A stretch of 64,000 nucleotides of DNA from positions 10,106,001 through 10,170,000 of the forward strand of contig NC_092350.1 of the NCBI RefSeq assembly GCF_963676685.1. The letters are read 5' to 3'. A model generated the notes under the pieces. The model was not told where the DNA came from and did not search any database. It saw only the letters and a program-made list of their open reading frames with translations. This DNA comes from Mytilus edulis. Its lineage: Eukaryota. The position numbers and the translations under genes are program-made. Every line of letters starts with the position of its first letter. Position 1 is the stretch's first letter. Below are positions 1 to 19,102 of the stretch, piece by piece.

Positions 1-2059
1 AGATCACTCAGTACTTACCTTTAAAAATTGTACTTTATCATCTGTAGAGCATGTTCCAATGACATGACATCCAGCTCTCTTGGCCCATTGTACCTACAAA
101 GGGAGATCACTCAGTTCTTACCTTTAAAAATTGTACTTTATCATCTGTAGAGCATGTTCCAATGACATGACATCCAGCTCTATTGGCCCATTGTACCTAC
201 AAAGGGAGATCACTCAGTTCTTACCTTTAAAAATTGTACTTTATCATCTGTAGAGCATGTTCCAATGACATGACATCCAGCTCTCTTGGCCCATTGTACC
301 TACAAAGGGAGATCACTCAGTTCTTACCTTTAAAAATTGTACTTTATCATCTGTAGAGCATGTTCCAATGACATGACATCCAGCTCTCTTGGCCCATTGT
401 ACCTACAAAGGGAGATCACTCAGTACTTACCTTTAAAAATTGTACTTTATCATCTGTAGAGCATGTTCCAATGACATGACATCCAGCTCTCTTGGTCCAG
501 TGTACCTACAAAGGGAGATCACTCAGTTCTTACCTTTAAAAATTGTACTTTATCATCTGTAGAGCATGTTCCAATGACATGACATCCAGCTCTATTGGCC
601 CATTGTACCTACAAAGGGAGATCACTCAGTTCTTACCTTTAAAAATTGTACTTTATCATCTGTAGAGCATGTTCCAATGACATGACATCCAGCTCTCTTG
701 GCCCATTGTACCTACAAAGGGAGATCACTCAGTTCTTACCTTTAAAAATTGTACTTTATCATCTGTAGAGCATGTTCCAATGACATGACATCCAGCTCTC
801 TTGGCCCATTGTACCTACAAAGGGAGATCACTCAGTACTTACCTTTAAAAATTGTACTTTATCATCTGTAGAGCATGTTCCAATGACATGACATCCAGCT
901 CTATTGGCCCAGTGTACCTACAAAGGGAGATCACTCAGTTCTTACCTTTAAAAATTGTACTTTATCATCTGTAGAGCATGTTCCAATGACATGACATCCA
1001 GCTCTCTTGGCCCATTGTACCTACAAAGGGAGATTACTCAGTACTTACCTTAAAAAATTGTACTTTATCATCTGTAGAGCATGTTCCAATGACATGACAT
1101 CCAGCTCTATTGGCCCAGTGTACCTACAAAGGGAGATCACTCAGTTCTTACCTTTAAAAATTGTACTTTATCATCTGTGGAGCATGTTCCAATGACATGA
1201 CATCCAGCTCTCTTGGCCCATTGTACCTACAAAGGGAGATCACTCAGTTCTTACCTTTAAAAATTGTACTTTATCATCTGTAGAGCATGTTCCAATGACA
1301 TGACATCCAGCTCTCTTGGTCCATTGTACCTACAAAGGGAGATCACTCAGTTCTTACCTTTAAAAATTGTACTTTATCATCTGTAGAGCATGTTCCAATG
1401 ACATGACATCCAGCTCTCTTGGCCCATTGTACCTACAAAGGGAGATCACTCAGTTCTTACCTTTAAAAATTGTACTTTATCATCTGTAGAGCATGTTCCA
1501 ATGACATGACATCCAGCTCTCTTGGTCCATTGTACCTATAAAGGGAGATCACTCAGTTCTTACCTTTAAAAATTGTACTTTATCATCTGTAGAGCATGTT
1601 CCATTGACATGACATCCAGCTCTCTTGGTCCATTGTACCTACAAAGGGAGATCACTCAGTTCTTACCTTTAAAAATTGTACTTTATCATCTGTAGAGCAT
1701 GTTCCAATGACATGACATCCAGCTCTCTTGGTCCATTGTACCTACAAAGGGAGATCACTCAGTTCTTACCTTTAAAAATTGTACTTTATCATCTGTAGAG
1801 CATGTTCCAATGACATGACATCCAGCTCTCTTGGCCCATTGTACCTACAAAGGGAGATCACTCAGTTCTTACCCTTAAAAATTGTACTTTATCATCTGTA
1901 GAACATGTTCCAATGACATGACATCCAGCTCTCTTGGTCCATTGTACCTACAAAGGGAGATCACTCAATTCTTACCCTTAAAAATTGTACTTTATCATCT
2001 GTAGAGCATGTTCCAATGACATGACATCCAGCTCTTTTGGCCCATTGTACCTACAAGGG
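1..2059 (-). repeat. 103-bp tandem array, 20 copies in window; each unit = 75-nt PTGR3 exon 7 + 28-nt GT..AG spacer
   Basis: Units start at 1, 104 ... 1958 (exact 103 period); minus-strand spacer gtaagaactgagtgatctccctttgtag. Confidence 0.95.
1976..2050 (-). CDS. PTGR3: PTGR3 exon 7 (first copy in transcript order; gene continues beyond the left edge)
   Basis: cttgtag| VQWAKRAGCHVIGTCSTDDKVQFLR |gtaaga; matches the ZADH2 CHVIGTCS segment. Which of the 20 copies is actually used cannot be seen from sequence. Confidence 0.75.
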
Positions 2060-2708
2060 AGATAACTCTGGTAACAATCACAATCAGTCCTGCACAATAT
2101 TTATATGCAATTATATATTGAATTCCATTGAAAATTTAATATAGCTTTTCTATTATCAGCCTTAGATGGGAAACTTAATAGGTATTGAGTGGTAGGGATG
2201 AGCCTCTGGGATAAGTCAATATCTTTATTTTTGCTAAGATATGATATCGGCAAGAAAGGTAGCTGATTAAATTGTAACTATCTGATTCTACTGTATATGT
2301 CAGACATTTTTTTAATCAATTTTTATTCCATGAAAAAGACTAATCTCAATCTAAAAAAAATCCTATATTTTCTTATAAAGCCAATTAAAATCTTTAATTT
2401 TACTTTTTTTTAAAATAAAATCATGGAACTTTTTTTCCAATAAAATCATGGAGTAAACATCTTTAGTAAAAGATGGTTGCTTTCACTGAGTTTTTAAACA
2501 TTTTTTGTTTATGTTCATGTATAACATCAAACAATACAATTATATTTCTTAACATACTAATAAAAATATTTTAGTTGAATTTATTTGTTTTTGTTCACAA
2601 TTGTGTCAAGCTTTCAGTTTCTGTATTTTAAAGTTTTGACTCTGAATGCATCCCAAATCATTTTTCCACAAAAACATGAGTAAAATGTTATTGTACTAAA
2701 CTACTCAC

Positions 2709-2737
2709 AGCAAACTGTCCAGTGCCCCCTGCAGCAG
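2709..2737 (-). CDS. PTGR3: PTGR3 exon 6 (NADPH-binding AAAGGTG motif)
   Basis: tttcag| (A)AAGGTGQFA |gtgagt; 29 nt, phases consistent with both neighbours. Confidence 0.88.
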
Positions 2738-3240
2738 CTGAAATAAAATATACATAATCATTTTTACATCCTTTTCGATATCATGTTGACATTGCTCCTT
2801 TCTGATATTTCTCATGTAAGTAAAAGAAGTTAAAGTGGCAAGTAAAACATAATAGTTATTCTAAATACTCCTGATATTACTCAAAGGGCATTAGATTAAA
2901 GAAACACAATATTTGGTAACTATCAATAGGAATGAAATGAGAATTCTCACAAATCCATTTCAGCATTTTCAATGTAACCATCTTTAATCTGAATTTCTTG
3001 ATGGAAAATATGATTTATATGATTGATTTTTGTTTGATTAACATTCAGAGGCATCAGTTAATGGATTTAGTGGAGTTACTTGTATCATGAAATGGCTGCT
3101 TTTATTAATTTGAATAATTAGACTGGGTAAGTATCACAATAATGACATGCATCGTAATAATAAGTCTCAAATTTCTGATTTCAATTTCACAGAACTTTAA
3201 TACCCACACAGTAATTTCTAAACTAAGAGTTCTTTAATAC

Positions 3241-3280
3241 CTGTAACAAGAACTGTTTCTCCAGCTTTTAACTCTCCATA
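3241..3280 (-). CDS. PTGR3: PTGR3 exon 5
   Basis: tttcag| YGELKAGETVLVT+G |gtatta; 40 nt. Confidence 0.88.
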
Positions 3281-4534
3281 CTGAAATTGATTAAAATAAA
3301 TCAGTTAGTGCTGTTAAACAAAAGAATGCAATTTGACCTACTATCAAGTTAATTAATTCAAATGAAATGTTTAATTGTTGATAACTGATATGCCTTAATC
3401 CTCCATAGAATGATGTATTTTTCCATATGAGAACACAAAAAAAGGTCTAATCTAACAAGCCATATATAATGTATGGATTCATTTATTTATATACTCTGTA
3501 ATAGATTTAGCCCAAGAAACCCACCCACTACATGTAATAATAATTAATCAGTTACTGTTTTAACTTTGGTATCTTGTACAGTTTATGTCACTGTGCAGAA
3601 CAATGTCAACAAATATATCACACTAGTTTCCTCCTCTCCATTTTAAAGGTGAAACTTCAATATCATTGATATGATGTTAACAGTACAATCAATTGCTAAG
3701 GGGAGATAATCAACTATTCTGACTGATTAAACAAAAGTTAGCTCCACTGGCATACACCACATCACCCGTATAATTGGGACAAGCTTAAGTGACTTGATCG
3801 CATAGTTTTTTTTTCTGTTTAGTTACAAAGGTAGGATTCTTTTCTGTTATGATTTTAAACACTAAAACAGTAATATTGTCTGATACAATCTGGCTTTATA
3901 AAGTTGTACTTGGATCATGTGACTCCAAACTTATTAGGGAAATATTAATCTTCCTGTTATCCAATGTGACGGTTTATCAAAGTAAGGCTGCAGTTCCAAA
4001 ATCAGTATTTGATTTAACACCCCGAAACCACTGTTTTCCTAAAATTTTGCTCTATTTTCGGTACATTTGACATTGACCTTAAACAACGTAAAATCAATTG
4101 GGATATTTTGCTCATTATATTTGACCTTTTACCCAAGTAATGCTGATATCCCATATGAAGTATTTGATTCAGCACTCTAAATCCATATTATATTTGAGGA
4201 GCAGATTTCTCTGTGCCTATTCAAGTTTTATATTTGTATCTTGCTATTTTAATCTTGTGGGTGAAACATGAATTACTGTAAATTCATAAATTATTGAGAG
4301 GATTTTATTGATACAAATAATACGGCGGAATGAGTCACAAAATATTAAGACCTTACATTCATAAATAAAAATATTTTCCTGAAATTGTAAGTACAGGCAA
4401 TTATTTCTGAACTTAACAGTATTTGAGTTAGCATTCCGAAACAAATCTCACTGACATACTGACAGTCCTAAATATATATAAGTCCTCCCGGCTTCTTTGA
4501 AGTGTTTTTGCAGCAATAGTTGAAATTTAGTTAC

Positions 4535-4633
4535 CTTATCTAAAGCAATGGCAGCAGTGGCTCCACTAACTTGTAAAGGGAGATAATCAGCTGACACTCT
4601 TGGTAATTTGAGCAAATTTCTCTCTGAGATATT
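4535..4633 (-). CDS. PTGR3: PTGR3 exon 4
   Basis: tttcag| NISERNLLKLPRVSADYLPLQVSGATAAIALDK |gtaact; 99 nt. Confidence 0.88.
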
Positions 4634-4767
4634 CTGAAAAATGAGTATTAAACAAAATAAATACTACTTTAACTCAAAAAAATTTGTCAAAATATTTTGA
4701 CAGTAGAAAAATCTAGATTTATCACTTTCCCTAACTTTAACAAATAATTGCTCATTAGACTTCCTAG

Positions 4768-5158
4768 AAACTAGAGGCTCTAAAGAGCCTGTGTCGCTCA
4801 CCTTGGTATATATGTGAATATTAAACAAAAGAAACAGATGGATTCATGACAAAATTGTGGTTTGGTGATGGTGATGTGTTTGTACATCTTACTTTACTGA
4901 ACATTCTTGCTGCTTACAATTATCTCTATCTATAATGAACTTGGCCCAATGAAAATTGTTAAAAATTGACTATAAAGGACATTAACTCCTTAGGGGGTCA
5001 ATTGACCATTTCAGTCATGTTGACTTATTTGTAAATCTTACTGTGCTGAACATTATTGCTTTTTACAGGTTATCTCTATCTCTACTAGTATTCAAGATAA
5101 TAACCAAAAACAGCAAAATATCCTTAAAATTACCAATTTAGGGGCAGGTGAGCTAAAA
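4768..5158 (-). mobile_element. Non-autonomous Helentron-like (HINE/DINE-1 type) element, internally deleted
   Basis: Subterminal inverted repeats gctcacct/aggtgagc and terminal hairpin aggctc-taaa-gagcct; same family as 61177-62045 in opposite orientation. Confidence 0.65.
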
Positions 5159-5659
5159 AGAGTGGTACATTCAAATCTTACATTCACAACAGCAAAATAT
5201 ATTCAGCAAATTAGTATCTTCAAATCTAAACAAAGCTTCTTTCATATTTTCTTCGGTAATAAAATAGTTTAGTATGATTTTGTTCTGTATTACAAATGCA
5301 TTATTTTTTTTAAAACACAATTTCAAATTAATTTTATTTCCCAATCATGTAGTTGTAAATGCATGCATCTGATGTTCAATAGTTGTCGTTTGTTGATGTG
5401 GTTCCTAAGTGTTTTTCTTTTTTATATATAGATTAGACCTTTGGTTTTCCCATTTGAATGGTTTTACACTAGTAATTTTTTTATGGGCCCTTTATAGCTT
5501 GCTGTTCTGTGTGAGCCAAGGCTCCGTATTGAAGACCGTACCTTGAACTATAACGGTTTAGTTTTATAAATTGTGATTTGGATGGAGAGTTGTCTCATTG
5601 GCACTCATACCACATCTTCCTATATCTAATTAATACTCAAACTGAAATAACCATTTTAC

Positions 5660-5755
5660 TTTGTATTCACTAAAAGCACCAAATTGTGAATAAGTAACTG
5701 GCTGGCCAATTCTGAGAGAAGCTCCAGGTCCAACGGCTGCCACTTCACCTACAGC
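5660..5755 (-). CDS. PTGR3: PTGR3 exon 3
   Basis: ttgcag| AVGEVAAVGPGASLRIGQPVTYSQFGAFSEYK |gtaaaa; 96 nt, in frame. Confidence 0.9.
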
Positions 5756-6950
5756 CTGCAAAATAACAGGATTATAGTGAAATACAGTCATCACCTGCAG
5801 CCTGGAAAATAAAGGATTACAGTAAAATGTAGTCATCACCTACAGCCTGCAAAATAACAGGATTATAGTGAAATATAGTCATCACCTACAGCCTCTAAAA
5901 TCACAGGATTATAGTGAAATACAGTCATCACCTGCAGCCTGCAAAATAAAGGATTATAGTAAAATGTAGTCATCACCTACAGCCTGCAAAATAACAGGAT
6001 TATAGTGAAATACAGTCATCACCTACAGCCTGCAAAATAACAGGATTATAGTGAAATACAGTCATCACCTACAGCCTGCAAAATAACAGGATTATAGTAA
6101 AATATAGTCATAACATGCAGCCTGGAAAATAACAGGATTATAGTGAAATACAGTCATCACATGCAGCCTGCAAAATAACAGTATTATAGTAAAATATAGT
6201 CATCACATGCAGCCTGGAAAATAACAAGATTATAGTGAAATACAGTCATCACATGCAGCCTGCAAAATAACAGGATTATAGTGAAATACAGTCATCACCT
6301 GCAGCCTGCAAAATAACAGGATTATAGTAAAATATAGTCATCACATGCAGCCTGGAAAATAACAGGATTATAGTGAAATACAGTCATCACCTGCAGCCTG
6401 CAAAATAACAGTATTATAGTAAAATATAGTCATCACATGCAGCCTGGAAAATAACAAGATTATAGTGAAATACAGTCATCACATGCAGCCTGCAAAATAA
6501 CAGGATTATAGTGAAATATCATCACCTACAGCCTGGAAAATAACAGGATTATAGTAAAATATAGTCATCACCTACAGCTTGAAAAATCAAAGAGTATAGT
6601 GAAATACAGTCATCACATGCAGCCTGGAAAATAAAGGATTATAGTAAAATATAGTCATCACCTACAGCTTGAAAAATCAAAGAGTATAGTGAAATACAGT
6701 CATCACATGCAGCCTGGAAAATAAAGGATTATAGTAAAATACAGTCATCACATGCAGCCTGGAAAATAAAGGATTATAGTAAAATATAGTCATCACCTGC
6801 AGCCTGGAAAATAAAAGATTATAGTAAAATGTAGTCATCACCTACAGCTTGAAAAATCAAGGAGTATAGTTAAATATGGTCAACACATAAGGCCTGCAAA
6901 ATAAAGGATTGCAGTAAAATAAAATCATCAGTACAGCCTGAAAAATGAAG
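5746..6950 (-). repeat. 46-bp minisatellite, ~26 copies, made of the PTGR3 exon 3 acceptor + first ~10 exon nt
   Basis: Minus-strand unit atgactgtatttcactataatcctgttattttgcag|gctgtaggtg; copies degrade away from the exon. Confidence 0.93.
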
Positions 6951-7506
6951 GACAATCTAAAAAGTTATTATTATACATGTATATTAAAGTTAACCCAAAA
7001 ATAATCATATAGACTTCAATTCATAGCATTATACACCTTATCACAATTGAGTCCAATCGGGAAAAAACAGTCATTTTAAAAACTACCTGTTTGGGTCAAA
7101 AGTTAAGCAAAAAAAAGGTCATCAGTAAAGAGCTGAGAGAGGAAAAAATTTAGAAAGAGATCTCAAGAAACTTTGATGGAGAATGATCCACTTTTTCAAA
7201 AAAGTATTTTGTTTGAAGTGTTTAGATGGTTTAAACAGGTCTCATCAAAAAGTATCATGAATGGTGCATTGTTTAAACAGGGTCCCAGATAATTTCAACT
7301 CATGAACTGAATGAAAAAGTTGTGTAATTTTAGATCTAACACTGAATGGATGTAGCAATTAGGTGTATCAAACACTAGTTTTTGGTCAGACAATCTTAAA
7401 ATGACAACTCATACATGTATGGCACTTAACAGTTTTTGAAAAGAAAACAAGAGAAAGATATGCTTATTACAACAGTGAACACAAATTTAGTTTTATCTTT
7501 ACAAAC

Positions 7507-7594
7507 CTCAAATCCGCAATCAAAGGGAGGTTTCACAGTTGTATCATATCTGCCTGCAGTGTAGTTTATATCTGATGCATTTATTCCAACAAAT
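7507..7594 (-). CDS. PTGR3: PTGR3 exon 2
   Basis: ttatag| [29 protein letters not shown] |gtttgt; characteristic ZADH2 GINASD..GRY..PF..GFE motif. Confidence 0.92.
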
Positions 7595-8835
7595 CTATAA
7601 ATAAAAAATGTAAAACATGAACATGTGAGGTTCCTGGAACTCAAAATTTTCACTGAAATAACGAAATTGATAGCAGCTTTAATAGATCACTATGAGGTGA
7701 GGGTTTGGGTCATTGTTGAAGGCCATACACTACAGTAAATTAAAGTTGTTAACTTCTATGCCATTTGATCTATGTTGGGGAGTTGTCTCATTGGCAATCA
7801 TACCAAATCTTATTATTTTTATAATCAAGATTAACTTTGTTAACAGTTGTGTAATCTCAATGAACAATCCTTTCATAAAAAAAAATTAAAAAAAAGTATG
7901 ATTGACAATGAGATAATAGTTTATCAGGTTGGGAAGATCTCAAAACATGGTCAATATCCCCATTTATTAATATAATACCTCAAATATGGTCTTACAGTTT
8001 TTTTTGTTTTTTGTTTGGTCCTCTGCTTGAACATGTACAGAATATATTTTTTTTCATCAATTTGGGAATCAGAATATATTTTTTTAGAAAAATACCATAC
8101 CCACTCCTGCCTTTTAAAGTTCAATGATTGTTCTATCTGAACTTATTATTTTGTTTTAGACAAAAATTATATGTAGAACATTCATCCTGGACATGCATGA
8201 ACTATTTGCCACTGGATGTTAAGCAACCAACAATCAATCAAAATTTAGGACATAGTCTTGGTATAAAGCTGGCATTTACGGTAGCGTCTTTCTCATATTA
8301 CATTCAATTTCTTAAATCTTCAATTCTAAAGTTCCGTGTTTTCATGTTTCAGTCAGATTTTTAACACGTGAAGCGCTTAAACGCCATCAATCAAAATTAT
8401 TTAGTCAAAATATTACACTAGAAGGTATGGGGAAAATCTTAATTCAGAATTTTTTTTTTATCCTCTGCTTGATCAGAGTATTTTTTTCTCTCATCAATTT
8501 GGGAATTAAAATATGTTTATAAGAAAATACTAGTACAAAAAATTATGACGTCTAGGAAGGCTATTTTAAATTTTTGCTTTGATACTTTCTTGCCACTTGT
8601 CAAAGCAAAAAAAATACAGTATCCCCTCCTGCCATTTGAACATGTGGAAGTTTAATGATCTTTCCCTAAACATTTTCCATCTGAACTTATTGTTTCATTT
8701 TAGACAAAACTATATGTAGGACATTCAGCCTGAATATGCATGAAATATTTGCCACTGGACATTAAGCAACCAACATTGTTGAACAATCAATCAATATATT
8801 CAACATAGTCTTGGTATAAAGCTGGCTTTTAAGAA

Positions 8836-8975
8836 AGTCCAAATAATTATGACGTCTTGGAACGCTATTTTAAATTTTTGCTTTTACGCCTTCATGGGAC
8901 GATGTAAGCGTTACAGTAAGGCGTCAAAGAATAAAATTATAATAGCCTTTCAAAATGTCATTATTATTTGGACTA
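8836..8975. mobile_element. Palindromic MITE (TIR agtccaaataattatgacgtc)
   Basis: Ends agtccaaataa...ttatttggact; the same family forms the outer layer at 51537-53056. Confidence 0.65.
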
Positions 8976-9081
8976 GAGTTTAAGGTAGGGCCTTCCTCGT
9001 ATTATAGAAAATCTCATAGAGTTTTATTGTCATTTGATTTTGTAAATAAAATATAGGGAAGAGACGTTTTAAATTAAACAC

Positions 9082-9218
9082 CTGTTTTTCACAAGAACTT
9101 CACCAGCTCCAGGATTTGGCAAACTTTCTTGCGTAATTTTGACAACATCACGGAATTTCTGACTTATTTTTGTTACAACGAGTTTCCTCATCGTAGAAGG
9201 TAACTGTCTAGATGCCAT
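9082..9218 (-). CDS. PTGR3: Prostaglandin reductase 3 / ZADH2-like MDR oxidoreductase, coding exon 1
   Basis: ATG at 9218; MASRQLPSTMRKLVVTKISQKFRDVVKITQESLPNPGAGEVLVKN(R); donor AG|gtgttt; phase 2 joins exon 2. Confidence 0.9.
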
Positions 9219-17013: not shown

Positions 17014-18995
17014 AAGATGTCTGTCTTAATGTCCTATCATTTACATAAGTTATATTTTTCAGACATTGATGTATTTCTGGCAGAGAACAGACATAAGTTT
17101 ATGGTTGATTAACACAGAAGATGTCTGTCTTAATGTCCTATCATTAACATTAGTTATATTTTTCAGACATTGATGTATTTCTGGCAGAGAACAGACATAA
17201 GTTTATGGTTGATTAACACAGAAGATGTCTGTCTTAATGTCCTATCATTAACATTAGTTATATTTTTCAGACATTGATGTATTTCTGGCAGAGAACAGAC
17301 ATAAGTTTATGGTTGATTAACACAGAAGATGTCTGTCTTAATGTCCTATCATTAACATTAGTTATATTTTTCAGACATTGATGTATTTCTGGCAGAGAAC
17401 AGACATAAGTTTATGGTTGATTAACACAGAAGATGTCTGTCTTAATGTCCTATCATTAACATTAGTTATATTTTTCAGACATTGATGTATTTCTGGCAGA
17501 GAACAGACATAAGTTTATGGTTGATTAACACAGAAGATGTCTGTCTTAATGTCCTATCATTAACATTAGTTATATTTTTCAGACATTGATGTATTTCTGG
17601 CAGAGAACAGACATAAGTTTATGGTTGATTAACACAGAAGATGTCTGTCTTAATGTCCTATCATTAACATTAGTTGTAATTTTCAGACATTGATGTATTT
17701 CTGGCAGAGAACAGACATTAGTTTATGGTTGATTAACACAGAAGATGTCTGTCTTACTGTCCTATCATTAACATTAGTTGTATTTTTCAGACATTGATGT
17801 ATTTCTGGCAGAGAACAGACATTAGTTTATGGTGGATTAACACAGAAGATGTCTGTCTTACTGTCCTATCATTAACATTAGTTGTATTTTTCAGACATTG
17901 ATGTATTTCTGGCAGAGAACAGACATAAGTTTATGGTTGATTAACACAGAAGATGTCTGTCTTAATGTCCTATCATTAACATTAGTTGTATTTTTCAGAC
18001 ATTGATGTATTTCTGGCAGAGAACAGACATAAGTTTATGGTTGATTAACACAGAAGATGTCTGTCTTAATGTCCTATCATTAACATTAGTTGTATTTTTC
18101 AGACATTGATGTATTTCTGGCAGAGAACAGACATAAGTTTATGGTTGATTAACACAGAAGATGTCTGTCTTAATGTCCTATCATTAACATTAGTTGTATT
18201 TTTCAGACATTGATGTATTTCTGGCAGAGAACAGACATAAGTTTATGGTCGATTAACACAGAAGATGTCTATCTTACTGTCCTATCATTAACATTAGTTA
18301 TATTTTTCAGACATTGATGTATTTCTGGCAGAGAACAGACATTAGTTTATGGTTGATTAACACAGAAGATGTCTGTCTTAATGTCCTATCATTAACATTA
18401 GTTGTATTTTTCAGACATTGATGTATTTCTGGCAGAGAACAGACATAAGTTTATGGTTGATTAACACAGAAGATGTCTGTCTTAATGTCCTATCATTAAC
18501 ATTAGTTGTAATTTTCAGACATTGATGTATTTCTGGCAGAGAACAGACATAAGTTTATGGTTGATTAACACAGAAGATGTCTGTCTTACTGTCCTATCAT
18601 TAACATTAGTTGTATTTTTCAGACATTGATGTATTTCTGGCAGAGAACAGACATAAGTTTATGGTTGATTAACACAAAAGATGTCTGTCTTAATGTCCTA
18701 TCATTTACATTAGTTGTATTTTTCAGACATTGATGTATTTCTGGCAGAGAACAGACATAAGTTTATGGTTGATTAACACAAAAGATGTCTGTCTTAATGT
18801 CCTATCATTTACATTAGTTGTATTTTTCAGACATTGATGTATTTCTGGCAGAGAACAGACATAAGTTTATGGTTGATTAACACAGAAGATGTCTGTCTTA
18901 ATGTCCTATCATTTACATTAGTTGTATTTTTCAGACATTGATGTATTTCTGGCAGAGAACAGACATTAGTTTATGGTTGATTAACACAGAAGATG
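17014..18995 (+). repeat. 104-bp tandem array, 19 copies of the nurim exon 3 acceptor + first 60 exon nt
   Basis: Exon-start positions 17063, 17167 ... 18935 (exact 104 period); only the last copy continues into the rest of the exon. Confidence 0.95.
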
Positions 18996-19102
18996 CTCCT
19001 CTAACCTCCCTTTTCTTCACATTAGTACAAATATTTTGTTGGATGATTCTGTTTCTGGAGAATACATTGACAGAGCCGTTCTTTCTAATTGGAATCAAGC
19101 AG
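18935..19102 (+). CDS. NRM: Nurim exon 3
   Basis: tttcag| TLMYFWQ..LWLIN..WMILF..FLIGIKQ |gttagt; 168 nt; matches the nurim G-L/I-KQ motif. Confidence 0.9.

Follow-up and report, generated by a model that had tools for sequence, protein, structure and literature searches.

How is a gene spliced when one of its coding exons, together with both splice sites, has been multiplied dozens of times at intervals too short to serve as introns? The question is raised by a 64,000-nt stretch of the Mytilus edulis genome (assembly GCF_963676685.1, contig NC_092350.1; G000:C7:10106001-10170000 in the numbering used here, hereafter the window), whose minus strand holds a gene of the prostaglandin reductase 3 (PTGR3, ZADH2-like) family with an exon 7 that lies within a 103-bp minisatellite. 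This is a transcribed and conserved enzyme gene with 71 near-identical complete exons placed 28 nt apart, yet one copy appears in its RNA-informed models. How splice sites are paired among many equal ones is an old and unsettled question, with first-come-first-served recognition, scanning, exon definition, and steric exclusion among the proposed rules, and the array is viewed here as a natural test case for splice-site pairing rather than as a new device for protein diversity. The explanation considered probable is that of a young, copy-number-variable, and neutral minisatellite within PTGR3, with a unit that encloses all of exon 7 and that is tolerated by splicing. A literature search recovered no publication on Mytilus PTGR3 or its exon array, and RefSeq already models the gene with one exon 7 per isoform.

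An entire exon multiplied with both splice sites

Tandem repeats were identified with Tandem Repeats Finder (TRF), units were parsed one by one on the minus strand, and the left flank was fetched to follow the array past the window edge. Within the window, TRF placed a repeat of 103-bp period at positions 1-2068, in 20.1 copies that match at 97%. The left edge of the window cuts the array, another 5.2 kb of which lies beyond it; the whole array comprises 71 units in 7.3 kb (G000:C7:10100770-10108068, equivalent to window positions -5230 to 2068). A genome search found the 103-bp unit to be confined to the PTGR3 locus, with no second site in the 1.37-Gb genome.

Read on the minus strand, with a slash marking a splice site, all 20 complete units in the window have the form ...CTCCCTTTGTAG / 75-nt open exon / GTAAG..., with spacers of 28 nt. 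A unit is thus made up of about 20-25 nt of upstream intron (pyrimidine tract and AG), the entire 75-nt exon 7, and 3-8 nt of downstream intron, and every intact unit carries a 75-nt, phase 0-0 exon copy. In this way, 71 acceptors (...TTTGTAG/) and 67 intact donors (/GTAAG) have been placed in the gene. The portion of the array in the window and its first three exon copies are:

Positions 1-2068, minus strand: units 1-20 and the start of unit 21 (TRF, unit parsing)
Positions 1976-2050, minus strand: exon copy of unit 1, VQWAKRAGCHVIGTCSTDDKVQFLR, with a private AAA codon and an AGG end
Positions 1873-1947, minus strand: exon copy of unit 2 (VQWT...FLR), equal to exon 7 of RefSeq isoform X3 (P0058)
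Positions 1770-1844, minus strand: unit 3, the first with the consensus exon VQWAKRAGCHVIGTCSTDDKVQFLK, which serves as exon 7 in RefSeq isoforms X1/X5 (P0179) and in other Mytilus species

The first-pass annotation, made from the letters of the window alone, had described a whole PTGR3 coding exon amplified with both splice sites in at least 20 copies, and this is upheld with a count of 71. The layout that it gave (AG, 75-nt exon, GTAAG, phase 0-0 symmetry, and 28-nt spacers) was recovered by unit parsing, and the residue variants that it listed (VQWAKR, VQWANR, VHWTKR, and VQWTKR; FLK, FLR, and FFK) were all found among the window units. Read-through of a spacer does reach a TGA stop, as it had stated, after V-R-T-E, and the marks that it assigned to the first copy are correct, the AAA codon being private to unit 1. 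Its statement that all copies stay open holds within the window and fails beyond it, where unit 46 carries a 1-bp deletion that produces a frameshift and a stop.

Two properties of the array bear directly on splicing. First, 28 nt is far under the workable length of an intron given the geometry of the spliceosome, so adjacent units cannot be spliced together. Second, the units are not all alike in their surroundings: the likeness of unit 1 to the repeat spacer stops about 20-25 nt upstream of its acceptor, and the native upstream intron, with candidate branch points, is retained at unit 1 and nowhere else in the array. Many units can moreover be told apart by single-nucleotide tags, such as AAA and AGG in unit 1 or ACC, TGT, and AGG in unit 2.

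The host gene

Exons were searched singly, and full-length comparisons were made with database proteins. The translation of the repeated exon had human ZADH2 / prostaglandin reductase 3 as its best solved-structure match (E = 3e-5) and was assigned to ADH_zinc_N by Pfam, while a downstream exon also matched ZADH2 (E = 5e-10). The gene spans 27.4 kb on the minus strand in 12 exons, and these match a 352-aa RefSeq protein from the same chromosome, "prostaglandin reductase-3-like isoform X3 [Mytilus edulis]". Whole-length similarity and the ADH_N and ADH_zinc_N domains that define PTGR3 membership were recovered through exon-by-exon matches to the ZADH2 structure. Judged by this homology, the host gene is PTGR3 (ZADH2-like), a member of the NADPH-dependent 15-oxoprostaglandin 13-reductase family. 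The repeated exon is exon 7, which encodes residues 164-188 in phase 0-0 and forms the helix-strand segment that follows the GxGxxG loop. A PTGR3-like paralogue at G000:C9:65218300-65261400 is 47% identical (about 47-60% per exon), has a single exon-7 equivalent, and may be compared with P0096 of M. galloprovincialis; it could serve as a functional back-up. A search across the genome for a retrocopy of the PTGR3 mRNA found none.

Presence of the array in other Mytilus genomes

Could the array be a product of assembly? The copy number of tandem arrays is error-prone in assemblies, and it is conceivable that the true locus has one or a few copies of exon 7 and that an assembler inflated a short repeat. 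The DNA evidence that bears on this consists of Logan contigs from two runs labelled as two other species (X8 and X13), for which word depths are not copy numbers. Summed word depth in the array bins was 276 and 168 in X8, versus about 24 on the unique flanks, and 336 and 79 in X13, versus about 7 on the flanks. The array thus stands at roughly 10-50 times the depth of its flanks in two independent DNA runs, which would correspond to about 20 and about 60 unit-equivalents in the two samples, as depth and not as copy number, versus 71 in the reference. The flanks of the X8 and X13 contigs diverge from the reference by about 1-1.6%, which is no larger than the divergence between units.

Gene models with several copies, from two older assemblies, point the same way. 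In the Nanopore-based M. edulis assembly MEDL1, annotated with BRAKER, PTGR3 models of 576 aa and 651 aa carry 10 and 13 copies of exon 7, respectively, two of the copies being frameshifted, and a 411-aa model from M. galloprovincialis carries about three partial copies. The identifiers of these models are CAG2185140.1 (P0001) for the 576-aa protein, P0056 for the 651-aa protein, and VDI02679.1 (P0057) for the 411-aa protein. All three chained models are most likely annotation artefacts created by the array, and the 576- and 651-aa proteins, with their 10-13 repeats, already stand in public databases as wrong models. Among gene models, those of M. coruscus, M. californianus, M. trossulus, and M. 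galloprovincialis from RefSeq and other sources are 352 aa long and have the consensus exon. Because both word depth and multi-copy models in other assemblies indicate repeated copies, the array is concluded to be common to the M. edulis species complex and not an assembly artefact. The structure of the array itself, with its organized variants, its duplicated 22-unit block, and its private variants, also speaks against inflation by an assembler, as does its length of 7.3 kb, which is below that of typical HiFi reads. Taken with the depth data, these features make an assembly artefact extremely improbable.

A probable single copy of exon 7 per message

Expression of the gene was followed with RNA reads aligned to window positions 1840-5800, including raw stranded RNA-seq data from a relative (run X24). 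The exons upstream of the array and the intron that leads into it are:

Positions 9082-9218, minus strand: coding part of exon 1 (ATG at 9218)
Positions 7507-7594, minus strand: exon 2, 88 nt
Positions 5660-5755, minus strand: exon 3, 96 nt (RNA depth)
Positions 4535-4633, minus strand: exon 4, 99 nt (RNA depth; present in PacBio cDNA contig record 9)
Positions 3241-3280, minus strand: exon 5, 40 nt, YGELKAGETVLVT (RNA depth)
Positions 2709-2737, minus strand: exon 6, 29 nt, (A)AAGGTGQFA, the glycine-rich NADP-binding loop (RNA depth; matches P0179)
Positions 2051-2708, minus strand: intron 6, from the exon 6 donor GCT/GTGAGT to the first array acceptor (RNA-seq depth zero)

The X24 reads cover exons only, all in the orientation of the minus-strand gene, and depth over unique intron sequence is zero. 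Approximate depths for exons 3, 4, and 6 are 8-9, 11.5, and about 14, and units 1 and 2 carry about 16 and about 9 reads, respectively. A 309-nt PacBio cDNA contig (X20, record 9) joins exons 3-4-5-6-7 in order. Its exon 7 agrees with unit 2 with one mismatch (a T-variant unit), which is a better fit than unit 1, and the contig runs 15 nt beyond exon 7. The RefSeq isoforms on this chromosome are all 352 aa long with exactly one exon 7. Expression and clean splicing of the gene are evident, and a single exon 7 is present in each RNA-informed model. Of the possible readings of these data, that of one unit per message has the best support.

As for which unit is used, at least two exon 7 sequences occur among the RefSeq isoforms, that of unit 2 exactly in isoform X3 and the consensus, first found in unit 3, in isoforms X1, X5, and others. 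These isoforms are no proof that one allele chooses among its units, because reads from near-identical units are unassignable and alleles differ between animals. Likewise, at position 2036 all 16 X24 reads carry the consensus base instead of the private A of unit 1; this is uninformative about the unit used because all DNA contigs of the species of X24 also carry the consensus base there.

Several observations weigh against a single copy per message, or against the simplest forms of it. Depth on exon 7 sums to about 25 (16 plus about 9; window positions 1840-2105), which is about 1.8-2.2 times that of the neighbouring exons. This two-fold depth may come from messages with several units or, equally, from faint pre-mRNA in which some 70 intronic units collapse on the two reference copies. 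The sequence of unit 1 itself (A...R) is in none of the RefSeq proteins seen, which disfavours a simple rule of first unit only; allelic differences between animals could account for its absence. Steric exclusion alone is insufficient to produce single inclusion, because non-adjacent units lie 131 nt apart, a distance that is workable as an intron. The RNA evidence at the array consists of read depths, the variant at position 2036, and the one cDNA contig, joints of transposons in intron 3 having filled the joint table. No open reading frame (ORF) with several copies of exon 7 was found in RNA assemblies among the database matches (candidates of 194-1008 aa); this agrees with a single copy per message but is weak evidence because short-read assemblies collapse tandem exon-7 repeats.

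These observations raise the prospect of leaky inclusion, in which non-adjacent units would be spliced across introns of at least 131 nt in a sizeable share of transcripts. The resulting messages would carry, in frame, two or more copies of the 25-residue segment and yield misfolded Rossmann domains, leaving the gene partly crippled and buffered by the C9 paralogue. In addition to the excess exon-7 depth in the raw reads, the units bear splice sites of consensus quality (although units 42, 43, 68, and 71 lack intact donors), and since 75 nt keeps the frame, nonsense-mediated decay would spare such messages. A candidate for the buffer is at hand in the 47%-identical C9 paralogue, which has one exon-7 equivalent, and BRAKER, which uses RNA-seq hints, chained 10-13 copies in the other assembly. 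However, the BRAKER models are largely ab initio, the RefSeq models are all 352 aa long, and the cDNA contig has exon 7 straight after exon 6 with no sign of a second copy in the 15 nt past exon 7. No multi-copy ORF was seen among the RNA-assembly matches, and intronic array reads that collapse about 35-fold onto two reference copies could explain the excess depth. Leaky inclusion is accordingly rated as unlikely, if still to be reckoned with.

Two fragments of very high-copy repeats lie in intron 3 of PTGR3 (window positions 4766-5164 and 5298-5696). Their DNA word depth is 10^5-10^6, and thousands of RNA reads from both strands fall on them.

Neutral drift and unequal exchange

Do the differences between units encode anything? 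Among the units, 16 distinct exon substitutions were counted: 4 synonymous changes stand beside 12 non-synonymous ones, and no change creates a stop. Substitutions that fall at random in exon 7 are expected to give 21% synonymous, 73% non-synonymous, and 6% stop changes, such that at least 4 synonymous changes are seen with P = 0.44 and zero stops in 16 substitutions with a chance of 0.36. The open frames of the copies are therefore no evidence of selection. Variable sites are as dense in the exon (15 of 75) as in the spacer (6 of 28; Fisher P = 1). Because the substitution pattern is random and the exon and spacer densities are equal, the residue variants are attributable to drift and not to diversification.

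Two units differ by 2.3% on average, and least of all at lags of 2 and 22 units. Units 4-23 recur as units 26-41 in the duplicated block of 22 units, about 40% of units are identical, and overall identity is 97-99%. With the lag minima and the recurring units as its signature, unequal exchange of multi-unit blocks is indicated by the sequence of the array. Several units are broken: besides the frameshifted unit 46, units 42, 43, and 68 have a donor changed from GT to CT, and unit 71, at the 3' end, is split by a transposon. Selection on the exon copies was rejected as an explanation, given the chance-level substitution ratio, the equal densities in exon and spacer, and the broken units.

The first-pass annotation had suggested a nascent mutually exclusive exon cassette. 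In form, the suggestion stands: the exons are tandem and of equal length and phase, the spacers are too short for splicing between neighbours, one copy is present per RefSeq model, and the two or more exon 7 sequences among RefSeq isoforms formally make up the mutually exclusive pattern. A functional cassette would further mean that one unit, by regulation or at random, is chosen per transcript, that PTGR3 isoforms thereby vary in their cofactor-binding fold, and that selection keeps the array. RNA reads that fall on both reference copies and a cDNA contig that fits a T-variant unit over unit 1 agree with a choice of this kind. So would a 13-nt stretch of intron 7 (L004:3407-3419) that is perfectly complementary to the 3' part of exon 7 (AGTACAATTTTTA; 17 of 19 positions when extended), were it a docking element; it is AU-rich, has a simple-shuffle P of about 0.01 with two introns tested, and is probably due to chance. 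A docking or selector pairing between the unit and intron 6 was also sought, and no complement above chance was found; of convincing selector pairing at the array, with introns 6 and 7 tested, there was none.

It is in function that the suggestion fails. Variant exons maintained by selection to encode distinct isoforms are not what the 4:12 substitution ratio, the equal exon and spacer densities, and the frameshifted, donor-dead, and transposon-split units describe, and some 40% of the units are identical. In M. coruscus, M. californianus, M. trossulus, and other bivalves, the consensus exon is the only one that the orthologue encodes, and a similar array is present in an unrelated gene, namely a 104-bp array in the neighbouring plus-strand gene. 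A functional cassette is for these reasons judged very unlikely. Of the mechanisms known to enforce exclusivity, the steric condition of 28 nt applies to adjacent units only, double inclusion is in frame and would not trigger decay, and all splice sites are of the GT-AG class.

A transposon in the last unit

Unit 71 is the native last copy, and it is split between TTTTT and AAAG by a non-autonomous transposon of about 320 bp, with loss of its donor. Excision of the insert in silico restores ...TTTTTAAAG/GTATAA, and this native donor is weaker than the GTAAGA/GTAAGT of all internal units. With the native last copy disrupted in this way, exon 7 must, on this haplotype, be spliced from a donor that a repeat junction created, and therefore the array is not wholly bystander DNA.

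The insert (L004:~4441-4770; C7:10100441-10100770) is without a target duplication and has a terminal hairpin (GCCCC...GGGGC) and a (GTCC)n microsatellite. A second copy of the transposon, with about nine internal repeats of 189 bp, is present further down PTGR3 (L005 ~7000-9100). The element resembles the Helentron-type satellite carriers of oysters (PMC7492417). An origin of the array as a transposon-borne satellite, of the Helentron type described from bivalves (PMC7492417), was rejected: the 103-bp unit is a single-locus repeat, and the transposon is a secondary insertion within unit 71.

How one unit might be retained

The proposal put forward here is that one unit is retained in each mRNA and that the other units are removed as intron. 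Neighbouring units would exclude each other, since U1 on a donor and U2AF/U2 on the acceptor that follows should be unable to occupy the same 28 nt together. Branch-point candidates of the internal acceptors are found only at -14 or within the preceding donor, and because of this position U1 on a strong donor should mask the next acceptor. Each internal acceptor would thus be largely masked by the strong donor upstream of it (GTAAGA/GTAAGT), and the unit that escapes masking, whether unit 1 or another, would be defined as an exon and joined to exons 6 and 8. As the native branch region is kept by unit 1 only, the unit used is probably at or near the 5' end of the array. The array itself may have been seeded by the mutational process that places tandem arrays on other exon-intron junctions in this genome, with unequal exchange thereafter.

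A more far-reaching version of this proposal is a self-masking exon array in which only one of about 67 equivalent complete exons can be defined per transcript, the choice being made largely at random. This is put forward tentatively and is thought improbable. If true, no larger natural system of stochastic, mutually exclusive exons would be known than the array, and it would have arisen in one lineage, within about the age of the M. edulis species complex, via a genome-wide process that favours exon-intron junctions for amplification.

Another route to the removal of the array was suggested by the AG/GT at each acceptor, in which the first-pass annotation had seen the form of a recursive splice site. 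Were each junction such a site, the array could be removed stepwise, in the manner of a ratchet, and a GT does follow every acceptor. That GT, however, belongs to the valine codon (GTA) that opens exon 7 and is conserved in all orthologues, and the site regenerated after ligation to exon 6, GCT/GTACAA, would have no more than 3 of its 9 positions complementary to U1. Stepwise removal should also yield messages that lack exon 7, whereas the cDNA contig and the gene models retain it. The weak regenerated site and the retention of exon 7 led to the rejection of this candidate, and recursive splicing is considered to have next to no likelihood here.

Relation to known repeated exons and splice sites

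The nearest precedent for a minisatellite seeded on a splice junction is the 37-bp variable-number tandem repeat (VNTR) in intron 7 of the human F7 gene, the first unit of which spans the boundary of exon 7 and intron 7 (Borensztajn et al., 2006, PMC1557585). In that VNTR, the repeated identical 5' splice sites are silent and the one adjacent to the exon is used (PMC1557585). Like the F7 repeat, the PTGR3 array is a junction-seeded minisatellite that multiplies identical functional splice sites in a gene. The normal F7 message is made from a single used site. Unlike the F7 repeat, which multiplies a 5' splice site only and in a handful of copies, the PTGR3 unit holds the entire exon and both of its sites and is present 71 times. 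As each unit is thus a whole exon with its own two sites, the PTGR3 array has no built-in authentic copy; what was natively the last copy is, moreover, the one that the transposon disrupted.

Clusters of mutually exclusive exons also arise from tandem exon duplication, as in Drosophila Dscam1 (reviewed in PMC9013439 and PMC6071210). The PTGR3 array shares with them tandem homologous exons of equal length and phase and a single copy in gene models. In contrast to such clusters, which have diverged and selected variants, normal introns, and either selector/docking pairing or frame surveillance, its units are 97-99% identical and neutral, and double inclusion would be in frame. Exons 2 and 3 of alpha-tropomyosin are a mutually exclusive pair that depends on steric hindrance, and the PTGR3 array resembles this pair in a spacing between donor and next acceptor that is too short for adjacent copies to be joined.

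In the kringle IV-2 repeats of human LPA, units of kilobase size are separated by normal introns and all copies are included, which results in a longer protein. As in LPA, complete exons and their splice sites have been amplified in tandem, and probably polymorphically, within a gene. The difference is that the PTGR3 unit measures 103 bp, that its spacers are unspliceable as introns, and that, on the best-supported reading, one copy enters the message. The array departs from the known cases in holding a complete exon in a unit of 103 bp, at a very high copy number, with unspliceable spacers.

Other arrays on splice junctions in the window

Minisatellites of Mytilus seem prone, genome-wide, to arise at exon-intron boundaries, and the PTGR3 exon 7 array is one case. 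Two other arrays of this kind are present in the window:

Positions 5756-6946, minus strand: 46-bp minisatellite of about 26 units (TRF), each joining ~34 nt from the end of PTGR3 intron 2 (with branch region, pyrimidine tract, and AG) to the ~11 nt that open exon 3
Positions 17014-18995, plus strand: 104-bp minisatellite of 19 units, each joining an acceptor (ttgtatttttcag) to the ~59 nt that open an exon of the neighbouring gene

The 46-bp array sets 26 decoy acceptors just upstream of the real acceptor of exon 3. Use of a decoy would shift the frame, because 46 is not a multiple of 3, and RNA depth is consistent with use of the acceptor adjacent to the exon. For the neighbouring plus-strand gene, a Pfam search with the ORF of its exon gave no match. 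Of roughly eight sizeable arrays in the window, three lie on splice junctions, which has a rough binomial P of about 0.001 on the assumption that 3% of the window is junction neighbourhood. The last unit of the 104-bp array continues into the real exon, which ends in CAAGCAG/gttagt near position 19102.

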